DNA from: Fimbriosthenelais zetlandica
Taxonomy: Eukaryota
DNA length: 64,000 nt
Direction: 5' to 3'
Assembly: GCA_977030845.1 (NCBI GenBank)
Contig: OZ365118.1
Span: 19,158,001 to 19,222,000 of the forward strand
Positions within the stretch are counted from its first letter, which is position 1, and every line of letters begins with the position of its first letter. Position numbers and translations under genes: made by a program. This document shows, in pieces, positions 54,064 to 60,000 of the stretch. The notes beneath the pieces were generated by a model, which was given only the letters and a program-made list of their open reading frames with translations, did not search any database and was not told the origin of the DNA.

Positions 54064-57000
54064 ATGGTTCTCTCAGGAGAAAATGCCCCTGCTCCCACAC
54101 CAAGCACTGTGAAGATGACCAACATCGATTCCACAGGTGAGATCTTTATTTAATGTTTTAGATTGTCTAGAATCCGTTTTCTTTATTAGCGATGGGCACT
54201 GGCCACTGCGGACTTTAGGTTCCGCTACCACCGGTTCAAAGGCAAACTGCTCATGCCTACATGCTAGCCTTTTACAGCTTTTGAACATGAAAATCTTTGA
54301 TAAATTCTCACTTTTGTGTACTGTAATACTAATTTATGTCAACTCGGTATCAAGGTGTTATGGGAAAAGGTGGATTTTCCGCAATTTGTGGGTTAGATTT
54401 GACGTGATCCACTTTTACAGGACACTGCGCCATTATTTTTGTTGTCAGGTTCTGGCCAACATGGCTGCCTTTGCTGGTTTGGGAGGGCTGTCAGAGTGGT
54501 ATTATGATGGGAGTGTATTGGTGATATATTTACCCCACGAGTACTTTACTCGAGGTTTCACATATAATAATGGTTGTGGTCATGTTGAGGAAACTCTGGG
54601 GGTTTTTAAAACTCGATTTATAGATGGCATGTGGAAATTGGCTGGGGGCCAAAGTCCACGTAAGATAGGGCTTATACGTAACAAGTGAGAAAGGTGGGCA
54701 ATGATGCAGATGGGGACTGGGGGGTGGGGTTGACTGAGACATGGCAAGACATTCCCCATATAGGCCTGTAGTGCTATTATATAGCCTATATAATTCTCTA
54801 CTGAGTCTACATCGAGTGTAAAGGACCATAGAATATATCATATAGGCCTGTAGTAACGTCCATAGCATAGGAGTGGGTGGGGGTACTAGAAAACGTTACA
54901 CTTATAGTTATACTAGGGCGGGGGGGGGGGGGGGGTCTACATCATATATATCCCCTATTCAGGCTATTGTATTCATCATATTGTTACTAAGAACCAGATG
55001 TCAAATGTTGCTTTTGTATAAATGACCCATATGTTGCCATGGATAATAGATAATATGCTATGTCAGGAGAAATTGATCCGCAAATGTCATTGCTTCATAT
55101 AGGGGCCTAATAAAAATGTTTTGAATACCGGTACGGTATTGAAAATATGATTATTCAAGGTATGGACTCGGTCACTGGGAACAAATCGCAAATTTGTTTG
55201 ATAATGGTATAAAGTTAGTTATATAGTAATCTAGGGAATTTCCTGGTAATTTCGAGGACATTGACTTATATTTAAAGCCTATATATTTTTGTTTCCAGGC
55301 TTGGCAGAGCTGGCCCACAGGGAGTATCAGAGTGGGGATTATGAATCAGCAGAACATCACTGTATGCAGTTATGGAGGCAGGAGCCAGACAATACTGGGG
55401 TACTACTACTCCTCAGCTCCATACACTTCCAATGCCGGAGGCTGGAGAAGTAAGTAGACTCATTATGTTACCTAAAGTATTAACTTAATTTGTATGAAAT
55501 CTATTTTACTATATTGCAAATCCAAGACGTGATATTCATTTGTAGGGCTAAAAATAGATATGTAGCCTAAGAGGGGTCAATAAGCCAGGAAATATTGTAA
55601 ATCTAACTATATCTCTCCCTCTTTTTCAGGTCTGCCTATTTTAGCCAGCTCGCCATCAAGCAGAACCCAATGTTAGCTGAAGCATACTCTAACCTGGGTA
55701 ACGTCTACAAGGAACGAGGCCAGCTACAAGAAGCCCTGGAGAACTACCGACATGCAGTACGTCTCAAGCCAGACTTCATCGACGGATACATCAACCTGGC
55801 AGCAGCGCTAGTAGCGGCGGGTGACATGGAGCAAGCTGTCCAAGCCTATGTGACGGCTCTACAGTATAACTATGTAAGTTCAAGCTCTTAAATCCAGTCA
55901 AGATATTGAGAAGTGAATGATAAATTTAAGGGTTAATTTCAATTTATAGGATATCCTCATAAAGCTAGAATGTTAAGAGCTTTCTGCTCTTTGCCCACTC
56001 AGCCTTCAGTGTTTCTAATCTTTGTTTCTCCTCTTTCAGGATCTATACTGTGTGAGGAGTGATCTTGGCAATCTACTGAAGGCTTTAGGGCGACTCGATG
56101 AGGCCAAGGTAAAATAGTCTTCTGTGAGATGGTGGCTCTTCAGCCAGGGTGCTCAACTTAACACCAATCCCCAGAATAATCTCTTATCAGTGTACAAGCG
56201 TGATAGTGGCTATGATCGAATGAGTGCCGTACAAAAGTTTTTTTTCCCATTTATTTTTTTTTCCTCCATAGAAAAAGTGCATCATTAGACGTCAACCTTT
56301 GCCCCCACTATTCCACCTTATTTGTAAGCCCACCCTTTCCCGTGGAAAGAAACACTTTTGGGATAAAGTCTTCACCAGCCTCATTTTCTATTGAGAATGA
56401 ATATGAGGAGAGTGTATCCGAGTCTGTCCTGTTTGGTGCCATTTGTGATCACTGGCAACAAAAATGTTCATTCACACTTCATATACAGAACAAAGGTTCA
56501 GTTACCAGCCATAGGCAGATTGAAGCAACGATAATATGGCTTCAGATAGGCTCAAAATTAACATTTCTGGTTTGATTTGATCCGAATTCACTACTTTGTA
56601 ATGTGGTAAAGATAATGTGAAATGATTTGTAGAAGGAAAGGTTTAAGGCAATCCTTGACTTGAAGTAGACGCTTGGAACAAGGTCCAAATGCATTTAAAT
56701 TAAAAACGCATGTATGCGTTGAAGCGTTCATTTTGACAGCCATGTCGCAGCGACCACCGGCCCACAATACAGGAGAAGAGTGGCGTCTCCTTCCATGGAG
56801 AAGTTATCACATTGTTAGTGGTAATTTCTTCATTTCCACCATTACAACTAAGGCAATTCTATGTGGAAACTGATTAAGGGTTAGGCTTTAAAAACCTATA
56901 TTAATATGACCATGACTGGTGTAGAATGTAACTGGGGGGTGGCGTGGGTTCGCAGCTTTTAATGGGCAATTATTAACAGTAACCACATAGGTTTGCTGCT

Positions 57001-60000
57001 CGGTTGTGCGCGCGTGTGTACTTTGTACCAAGGAGCACTTCAATATCAGGGATTGTATTCTTTCTTCAGAATGTTTACAATTAGAACCACATTGTCGGCT
57101 TTCTCTCTGCCTCAGGTGACCTTTATGTAGAAGTCATTCTATTTATTTGCATGAAGGATATTGTGGGTTTGGGAGAAACGTGTAAATTCTCGTGTTGGGA
57201 GGGATAGTAGAACTATGATGATGGGAAGCATGTTTATATATAATGAAGACCTACACAGACTGGCTCTACTGCTGTTATATGAGGTTATCAAAACAAAGCT
57301 GAATAGTAACAGTAGTAGGTAAACAAAAAACCTTATCTATTCATTCAACATATGATGGAATTTCCCCTCAAAATAAGGTTACATTGGTGGCATTGTATAT
57401 GTATAGTGTATCAAACTTTCCCAATTTATGTCTGCATGATTTGATAATCAGAAAGAGATAATATTATATCCTCAAATATGCCACACTATTCGGAGAACAT
57501 ATTTTCAGGGGAGATTCTTAATATACATGCAACGGAAATTTCTATTCTTTAAGAAACGACTACTGAGTCCTTGATTTAAAGAAAGAGTATCATTTGGTAC
57601 AATTCTTTGAGAATGAAGTCCACTTCATACAACTTGATTTGAACCTGTGATGCCATATGAAAAAGTAATAATCAGTAGTCTGTGAATAGAAATTTAACAT
57701 TTTACTTCCTTATACACATCTATGATACTAATGACTATTTTTTCTTTCAATCCTCCATTTAGTTATCTAGCCCAAAGACCCGGTGCTCTGCGGATACACT
57801 AATCCGGATGTTGATGGAGCATGACATGCTAAGCCTGCAAGAAATTGTCCAGACCTGGTATGACATTATGTGGTTTGTAGCCAGATTGTTACCCAGATAT
57901 GCTATTCACCTTCAACCTCTTCATTCAGTCAGTGGGGAGTGAGAACTGACCATATGCTTTACATGGCTAAAGAACGAATGTCTGGTTGGTAAGTGAGCCC
58001 TTGCCAAGTTGAGTAAGGAAGTGGGTCCTGTGGCCTGCTTTGCTTGGGTTAATACAATTTTTTCAGACATTCAGAATGGATAAGAGTCATGACTTCTGAC
58101 CGCCGTGTAAAATTTAAGCATACTGTAATTGACATGGTTGATGTAAGCAATATTTTGGAAAAAGATCAGAATGCCGTAGGGAAGAGACGGCTTTAGAGTA
58201 AAAAGAAATTATCTTACAGCAATAATGGTGGTATTGATGATTATCTGTCTCAAGAGATATTATCTAAGAAACTTTTCTCTTTCATATAGTTGGGTGAATC
58301 TCAAGCTCAGCGCGCGTTTTACGTTTGGCGCAGCGTTTCTTGCAAGCAGCGGTCGCATGCGGTGTAAGATGCCTGTCCCCTTCTCACCACAGTTGACATG
58401 CGCGCATTGTATGACAACTGTGGCCTTTACAACACCTTAACTACTTTGAAGTGCTCAGCCATCATTGATCTGAACAATCTTTAATGTTTTACTCAAGCGC
58501 AGAGTTTGCATTGAAGTTCCAAACTTATATATATATATTGCTTTTTTCACATTTGTAAAACTCTTTGTTTGGTGCAGTACTTCAAAGACCTGTAACTTAC
58601 TAAGGTATCAACCTGCTATGAAATTGTTATAAAATCAATGGGAATAGAGATTTGACCTGGTGTGGTTTCTACTTGTCTTATTTGAGTTAATCAAGGCACA
58701 CGCATCTTACACATCCTTCAACGTGTATGCTACACGTGCGCATTAGCAGGGCAGACGGCGCGGACGCTGGCGACATTCATCCATGTACTCTTAACTAACA
58801 CTCTCTCTTTCTTCCCTTTTTTTTGTCCCTCCTTTGATTTCTCCCCTGGGGAATCATTGTACCCTCTGCTGGTTGCTCTCTATTGGGCGTACTACCGGCT
58901 TATCTAGGCTTGTTACCTGAAGGCCATCGAGACACAACCCAACTTTGCTGTCGCCTGGAGCAACCTAGGATGTGTATTCAATGCACAGGGCGAGATCTGG
59001 CTGGCCATTCATCATTTTGAGAAGGTCAGTGTCTCCACATGTGCCTACTGGCTATTTGCATCTTGTTTCGTGGATATCTGTTATTGTGAATTGTACTCTG
59101 ACTTTAGGAAAATCAAGATATATTGCAATACTGATTGAATATTTCTCTTTCAGGCAGTGGCATTGGATCCAAACTTCTTGGATGCTTACATCAATCTAGG
59201 CAATGTCCTCAAAGAAGCCCGTATATTCGACAGGTACGTTAAGTTTCCACTAATTGCTTTATAACTCACATTCTGGAAACTCGGGGGGGAATTCACTTGA
59301 AAAACTGTTAAGATACTGAGAATGACCATCTTTTTGCAGGGCTGTCGCCGCCTACCTGCGAGCACTCAACCTCAGTCCTAATCATGCAGTCGTCCACGGT
59401 AACCTCGCCTGTGTTTATTATGAACAAGGGTGAGTACTTGTGCATTTACTCTCCAAACATTCTCTCTTGTACTTGAATGTTTTCTACATAACTAATACTA
59501 ACAAAGGATGCATTGGTCTAATGTTGCTCCTTTATTTCAGCCTTATTGACTTGGCCATTGATACGTACAGGAGGGCCATCGAACTCCAACCAAATTTCCC
59601 TGATGCCTATTGCAACCTGGCCAACGCCCTTAAGGAAAAGGGAAAGGTAAATGTAAATGCCGCCACTTATTCCTTCCATTGGTATAATTCCTTCTGAGTT
59701 ATTGTCCCTTTTTTGTTGTAGTCTTAAGGTTTCCTTGTCACCCTTCCTCATCCCGTCTCCCTCCTCCCTCATTCTAGATCCAAGAGGCGGAGGAATGTTA
59801 CAACACGGCTCTGGCACTCTGTCCTACCCATGCTGACTCCCTCAACAACCTGGCTAATATAAAGAGGGAACAGGGCAACTCTGAGGAGGCTGTCCGTCTC
59901 TACACCAAGGCTCTAGAGGTGAGGACTGAATACCCCATCCTATCCTAACTCTTACATATAGGTGCTGGATCATTTCTTTAATTTCTCTACTATGTGAATC

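Follow-up and report, generated by a model that had tools for sequence, protein, structure and literature searches.

Intron 4 of a lophotrochozoan O-GlcNAc transferase gene, an orthologue in position of the vertebrate detained intron, contains a predicted poison exon

Results

Structure of the OGT gene

The stretch analysed here, 64,000 nucleotides (nt) of Fimbriosthenelais zetlandica contig OZ365118.1 (henceforth the window), carries the coding region of O-GlcNAc transferase (OGT) on its plus strand from position 54115 to its end at 64000. All features described below lie on this strand unless stated otherwise, and our subject is the fourth intron of the gene, which sits where vertebrate OGT has a detained intron. 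The encoded protein is 85-93% identical to animal OGTs; the protein itself is absent from the protein collections searched, where its closest match is the metatranscriptome protein P0272 (93%). A maximum-likelihood tree places it within Lophotrochozoa (support 100/97), beside other transcripts and then the annelid Ridgeia (88/77), in keeping with a lophotrochozoan animal that is probably an annelid. The gene extends beyond the end of the window, and 16 introns lie inside it, their junctions established by direct sequence reading and a homologue-guided junction search. In order of position, introns 1 to 8 measure 1162, 180, 166, 2799, 129, 106, 111 and 131 nt, and introns 9 to 16 measure 135, 194, 203, 153, 193, 1016, 227 and 171 nt.

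Intron 4 (56109-58907; 2799 nt, GT-AG, phase 0, aag/GTAAAA ... ttatctAG/gct, with slashes marking exon-intron boundaries) is the largest intron of the gene; the other 15 have a median length of 168.5 nt. It is preceded by exon 4 (56040-56108), a 69-nt exon that encodes ...LGRLDEAK and ends in phase 0, and whose 23 residues are 100% identical to P0272. Exon 5 (58908-59024) follows with 117 nt encoding ACYLKAIET...HHFEK. A related mRNA contig (L001) spans the 56108/58908 junction without interruption. A first-pass annotation of the window had described an intron of this length between GRLDEAK and ACYLKAIET with these flanking exons, and had noted that 13 of the 15 other OGT introns measure only 106-227 nt; the junction search bears out the former and the full gene model the latter.

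Nothing in the rest of the 64-kb window repeats the intron, and a scan of it for tandem repeats was empty. It contains no open reading frame (ORF) longer than 77 amino acids, and searches of it gave no match to Pfam, to Rfam or to tRNAs. Thus, mobile-element cargo is not the cause of its size. Two other candidate features were set aside. An inverted repeat (58362-58379 and 58695-58712; 18 nt with an 11-bp perfect core) was given no weight, as about one such match is expected by chance in 2.8 kb. The k-mer CAAGAAATTG, shared by four introns, proved to be a false lead, its positions and contexts being unrelated.

Intron 4 in other bilaterians

For comparison with the window we rebuilt the introns of nine annotated OGT genomic loci by exact protein-to-DNA matching; all junctions are GT-AG. 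The ten loci comprise the window, two annelids, a brachiopod, a nemertean, two bivalves, a hemichordate, amphioxus and a sauropsid. An intron at K/ACYLK, in phase 0 and flanked by exons of 69 and 117 nt, is present in 10 of these 10 bilaterian loci. In the sauropsid (L010), for instance, a 69-nt exon is followed by a 2858-nt phase 0 intron at LGRLEEAK/ACYLKAIE and a 117-nt exon. The identity of codon, phase and flanking exons supports orthology between intron 4 of the window and the detained intron of vertebrate OGT, as judged from gene structure. Positional orthology with the mammalian intron, which the first-pass annotation had proposed, thereby stands at all loci, the vertebrate side of the comparison being sauropsid and not human DNA.

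The length of the intron varies remarkably little. It measures 2501 nt in Lingula (brachiopod), 2654 nt in Ptychodera (hemichordate), 2710 nt in Lamellibrachia (annelid), 2799 nt in the window, 2838 nt in Tubulanus (nemertean), 2858 nt in the sauropsid, 2905 nt in Dreissena (bivalve), 2935 nt in Branchiostoma (amphioxus), 3049 nt in a scallop-like bivalve and 3627 nt in Owenia (annelid). The geometric mean of these ten values is 2874 nt (range, 2501-3627 nt) and the standard deviation (SD) of log10 length is 0.043, whereas the 179 other introns of the same ten genes span 84-22959 nt with an SD of 0.44. At the 19 other intron positions common to at least five species, the corresponding SD values are 0.23-0.68 each. 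Intron 4 ranks as the largest or second largest intron in nine of the ten genes, and human OGT intron 4 has a reported length of 3.3 kb (PMC7373989). An extreme case among the other introns is Branchiostoma intron 2 (L009, 1465-24423), which spans 22959 nt and holds Mutator-like and YqaJ/alkaline-exonuclease-like genes; intron 4 of the same gene is still 2935 nt long.

The ten-species lengths reverse the selective enlargement of intron 4 that the first-pass annotation had read from the window. The intron has not been enlarged in this lineage; it was kept near an ancestral length of about 2.9 kb, and it is the neighbouring introns that shrank, to 106-227 nt.

Splice signals of intron 4

Splice sites were scored with a position weight matrix (PWM) built from the other introns. 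The intron 4 donor of the window (56106-56114, aag/GTAAAA) has no G at position +5 but an average PWM score. A +5 G is found in two of the ten intron 4 copies, compared with 136 of 179 other introns (Fisher p 5e-4). PWM scores of the donors are nevertheless the same as those of other introns (p 0.95), and we rejected the idea of a weak donor. The acceptor is a different matter. In the window (58888-58910, ..ggcttatctAG/gct) it scores 1.6 bits against a median of 10.4 bits, which places it in the 1st percentile. In nine of the ten species the intron 4 acceptor scores between -2.9 and 5.1 bits, in the bottom 0-4% (Mann-Whitney p 3e-6). Of the two intron 4 splice sites, only the acceptor is weak by PWM score. 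The TAG of the window acceptor is also an in-frame stop for any read-through out of the intron.

Upstream of this acceptor lies an unusually long zone free of AG dinucleotides (58755-58905; 151 nt, or 153 nt with the terminal AG), compared with a median of 33 nt in other introns. It contains a candidate branch point, CTAAC at 58795-58799, more than 100 nt from the acceptor. Next come a CU-rich tract (58800-58850) and some 55 nt with no pyrimidine bias. AG-free zones of at least 100 nt occur in seven of the ten intron 4 copies and in three of the 179 other introns (Fisher p 9e-9). The 3'-end block of the window intron that comprises this zone is similar in sequence to its counterparts in Lamellibrachia (z 5.2) and Lingula (z 4.1).

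A predicted internal exon

The strongest conservation within intron 4 falls on a predicted internal exon of 95 nt at 57763-57857, with the acceptor ..catttAG/TTAT and the donor ctg/GTATGA. Both splice sites are weak by PWM (3.8 and 6.3 bits). The segment 57729-57908 aligns to Lamellibrachia intron 4 with a local score of 305, compared with 206 +/- 11 for 200 dinucleotide shuffles (z 8.9), none of which reached 305 (maximum, 248). Part of the same segment also matches Lingula intron 4 with a score that was reached by 0 of 100 shuffles. In the three-species alignment, an invariant TACTAAT is followed by a pyrimidine tract, AG/TTAT, a poorly conserved body, TG/GTATGA and a downstream GTTTG-AG. 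The invariant element contains a branch-point-like ACTAAT (57727-57732), 30 nt upstream of the internal acceptor. Directly downstream of the donor lies the conserved element GTATGA..AT....GTTTGTAGCCAGATT (57858-57890). The pattern GGTATGA.{4,22}TTTG.AG occurs once each in the 64-kb window, the Lingula locus (L003; predicted exon at 5006-5090) and the Lamellibrachia locus (L014; predicted exon at 7283-7367), always in intron 4, and is absent from the seven other loci; it was derived from these same three sequences, so that the independent evidence is that of the shuffle tests.

A sliding similarity profile over intron 4 peaks at the internal exon (z 8.7). Introns 1 and 14, used as controls, reach a maximum z of 1.9-2.7, and the profile showed no conservation between intron 14 and the orthologous Lamellibrachia intron. 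The result depends on the alignment regime: the chained block was seen only with softer gap scoring applied to the exon region, and when the complete intron 4 sequences of the window and Lamellibrachia were aligned locally under stringent scoring, the alignment was not significant, 26 of 100 shuffles reaching its score.

The internal exon is 95, 85 and 85 nt long in the window, Lamellibrachia and Lingula, respectively, none of which is a multiple of three, and starts 1655, 1742 and 1668 nt from the 5' end of the intron. Its inclusion would introduce a premature stop in all three species, in the window by a frameshift that leads to a stop in exon 5. We consider it very probable that this exon is a real splicing element under selection. 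The first-pass annotation had foreseen a set of regulatory parts and had suggested a search for conserved blocks among relatives. Such blocks were found, and they include the expected parts: a weak acceptor with a distant branch point, and a stop-creating internal exon whose splice sites are constrained across annelid and brachiopod.

Similarity to Lamellibrachia intron 4 is also raised in a secondary block at 57309-57488 (z 4.1). Further downstream, a second acceptor-like element, TTTTCTCTTTCATA followed by TAG (58273-58289), matches Lamellibrachia at 14 of 14 positions and has a similar run in Owenia; its acceptor score is 8.2, the surrounding block (58269-58448) has a z of 3.4, and a CpG-rich stretch follows it. 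The strongest donor-like site within intron 4 is ttg/GTAAGT (7.7 bits). It would end a candidate extension of the internal exon (57858-57988); the exon so extended would measure 226 nt and contain a TGA.

Transcripts from molluscs

RefSeq lists short OGT isoforms of 861-903 amino acids for Mytilus, scallops, gastropods and Dreissena, in which a novel 5' exon is joined to exon 5 at junctions such as M/ACYLK and MGVARL/ACYLK. One of these, P0319 of the scallop-like bivalve, consists of exon 4, a frame-shifting 94-nt cassette (intron nt 1802-1895) and exon 5. Read in the normal frame, the cassette brings a stop after nine codons, and the annotated ORF starts from an out-of-frame ATG in exon 4. 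The P0319 'short isoform' is a poison-exon transcript that was reinterpreted by the annotator. Conservation between the scallop-like bivalve and Mytilus covers the branch points of this cassette, both of its splice sites and a second GT site downstream; it does not extend to the exon body.

Mytilus RNA contigs from several samples (L011-L013) contain up to 1794 nt of intron 4, with the cassette unspliced, joined directly to exon 5; in the same contigs all introns after exon 5 have been removed, through to the end. A retained intron 4 would be expected to leave this pattern. ORFs of a second bivalve are truncated at the same point. Mytilus has a perfect donor, ATG/GTAAGT, some 180 nt before exon 5 (L011, about 1590-1605). 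Because it provides an extra exon end near the 3' end of the intron, it accounts for the Mytilus short isoforms with an M/ACYLK junction. In Dreissena an alternative exon lies within intron 4 (L008, 31138-31293), with its donor ctg/GTAATA 1539 nt into the intron.

Other features of the gene

Exon 1 (54115-54136) codes for MTNIDST plus one base. It is followed by intron 1 (54137-55298, 1162 nt), in which a run of about 19 G residues occupies 54919-54937. Immediately before exon 4, a tyrosine codon at 55871-55873 (LQYNY/DLYC) takes the place of the proline found in most other OGTs examined; some have histidine or threonine. A sub-threshold Rfam match to snoR77Y, a C/D small nucleolar RNA, falls on the minus strand of intron 3 (55880-55966). 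Scoring 22.7 bits, where the gathering score is 52, with an E value of 0.97, it is most likely a chance match. A second intron of clearly excessive size is intron 14 (62156-63171; 1016 nt), which precedes LNNKAATG.

Discussion

When O-GlcNAc is high, human cells detain OGT intron 4, a response that requires a 526-nt silencer at intron nt 1771-2297; the silencer is conserved to jawless fish (PMC5588854). It overlaps a decoy or poison exon of 143-153 nt with weak splice sites, which divides the intron into two detained introns (PMC7261177, PMC12017769). A full-text literature search, with incomplete journal coverage, found no report of an invertebrate counterpart.

Our results suggest that intron 4 of this lophotrochozoan OGT, orthologous to the vertebrate detained intron, is built for slow, conditional splicing, an interpretation that we think on balance likely. 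As read from the sequence, it is probable that the intron works as a regulated retention or poison-exon unit. That O-GlcNAc is the signal in this animal is suggested by analogy, and we would put it at a little less than an even chance. The mechanism is modelled on that of mammals (PMC5588854, PMC7261177, PMC12017769). Parts of the spliceosome would assemble on the internal exon and compete with the direct joining of exons 4 and 5. A transcript could then meet one of three fates: productive splicing, inclusion of the poison exon leading to nonsense-mediated decay, or retention of intron 4 and confinement to the nucleus. The balance between these fates would set the dose of OGT, and the level of O-GlcNAc would probably tune that balance in the manner of a homeostat. 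What supports this interpretation is the anatomy of the intron and the evolutionary constraint on it.

Several observations weigh against it. Retention and poison-exon use in this animal are predictions from sequence. The PWM scan by itself does not pick out the internal exon; it also misses the scallop cassette, which is backed by RNA. The Dreissena intron 4 acceptor is of normal strength. Pairwise blastn and soft local alignment found no intron 4 similarity between phyla beyond the annelid-brachiopod match, and none between the window block and the sauropsid intron (z -0.4); homology of the internal exon with the vertebrate decoy thus rests on position and logic. The Mytilus contigs, from libraries of unspecified type, fit both retention of the whole intron and a start site inside it. 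Finally, the sampled species are all slow-evolving, with arthropod, nematode, echinoderm and cnidarian loci outside the sample, and Drosophila is reported to have no silencer-like element (Park et al., PMC5588854), so the unit is not universal.

Intron 4 might instead owe its size to an internal promoter or an alternative first exon, from which a short OGT without the first 4.5 TPRs would be made, like vertebrate mOGT, and not to a role in controlling dosage by retention. We regard this as unlikely, and it could coexist with slow, conditional splicing. It would account for the mollusc RefSeq short isoforms with their novel 5' exon and for the Dreissena exon inside intron 4, and the Mytilus contigs could begin within the intron. 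In Mytilus (L011) and Lamellibrachia (L014), an NRF1-like, CpG-rich GCGCATGCG located 95-125 nt ahead of exon 5 also favours it, as does CGCATGCG at 58352-58359 of the window. In the window, however, the acceptor TAG is an in-frame stop, and in the reading frame that runs from the 95-nt cassette into exon 5 there is a TGA with no ATG after it; no short protein can therefore start in this cassette. The scallop 'short isoform' owes its start to an out-of-frame ATG in a poison-exon transcript, and a promoter would leave the weak acceptor, the AG-free zone and the conserved splice signals unexplained. The otherwise AT-rich intron 4 of the window has two CpG-rich patches, at 58308-58420 (including CGCATGCG) and 58735-58775. 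These patches and the GCGCATGCG-type motifs may represent an internal promoter or a site for a GCAUG splicing factor.

The same patches, together with the conserved non-coding blocks, could be taken as signs of DNA-level regulatory elements, such as an intronic enhancer, or of an unrelated embedded non-coding RNA, the size of the intron being set by this cargo. We think this improbable: the strongest block is laid out precisely like an exon, with a branch point, a pyrimidine tract and AG ahead of a body of 85-95 nt that is not conserved, and with GT and a flank after it. The equivalent exon is spliced in bivalve transcripts, and the Rfam and tRNA scans were empty. Less probable still is an ordinary large intron without function, its size and features being due to chance or to neutral leftovers such as decayed mobile elements. 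Most of intron 4 indeed lacks sequence similarity across phyla, and short matches such as CAAGAAATTG and the 11-bp inverted repeat are at chance level. But a neutral intron would not be expected to keep its length constant within about 10% in ten lineages in which every other intron varies 3- to 100-fold, nor to show a recurrently weak acceptor (p 3e-6), a recurrent AG-free zone (p 9e-9) and a block with a z of 8.9; mobile-element ORFs, Pfam matches and repeats are absent. A neutral origin is strongly disfavoured.

New in this work is an invertebrate instance of the OGT intron 4 unit, the published conservation of the silencer stopping at jawless fish (PMC5588854), as is the near-invariant length of the intron across distant phyla, which is unusual in itself. 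We propose, more tentatively, that the combination of a weak acceptor, served by a distant branch point, with a decoy or poison exon some 1.7 kb into the intron is at least as old as the last common ancestor of chordates and lophotrochozoans, and that stabilising selection has acted on total length (about 2.9 kb, within 10%) for more than half a billion years, with length serving, for instance, as a kinetic timer of splicing. Such an age, if true, would place the unit among the oldest known metabolic feedback circuits based on splicing. If the unit is as old as the bilaterians, O-GlcNAc homeostasis by intron detention would be an ancestral animal trait that could be dissected in compact invertebrate genes. 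The invariants would then indicate that the mechanism truly depends on length, on a weak acceptor and on where the decoy lies, not on what its sequence is.

Vertebrate mOGT, the short isoform reportedly described by Hanover et al. in 2003, is said to be initiated inside intron 4. The mollusc RefSeq short isoforms resemble it in looking like transcripts that start in intron 4 and join exon 5, but the window differs from mOGT in having no codable N-terminus, given the in-frame TAG at its acceptor and a cassette without an in-frame ATG. The intron 4 unit of human and mouse OGT is the closer parallel (PMC5588854, PMC7373989, PMC7261177, PMC12017769). It shares with the window the codon boundary, the phase and the flanking exon sizes (checked on the sauropsid), the rank of largest intron in the gene, a similar length (2.8 kb in the window, 3.3 kb in human) and a weak-site, stop-creating cassette about 1.7 kb into the intron, close to where the human silencer lies (nt 1771-2297). 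A weak acceptor is common to the sauropsid intron and that of the window. Unlike these similarities of layout, the sequence of the vertebrate element has no detectable counterpart in the window, and its exon is longer (143-153 nt versus 85-95 nt). Retention, nuclear detention, a response to O-GlcNAc and dependence on SFSWAP characterise the human and mouse system, whereas our view of the window unit comes from its DNA.

The unit also resembles the poison exons and detained introns by which SR protein genes and CLK1/4 regulate themselves, and the detained intron of MAT2A (PMC7261177, PMC4281565). These too consist of a non-coding cassette between two slowly spliced introns, with conservation concentrated on splice signals and flanks, and they lead to nonsense-mediated decay or nuclear detention. 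The products of those genes are RNA-binding proteins, kinases or an S-adenosylmethionine (SAM) synthetase, and what is sensed is the gene's own product or SAM. By analogy with the mammalian gene, the OGT unit would differ from them in its presumed signal, the glycosylation state of proteins.

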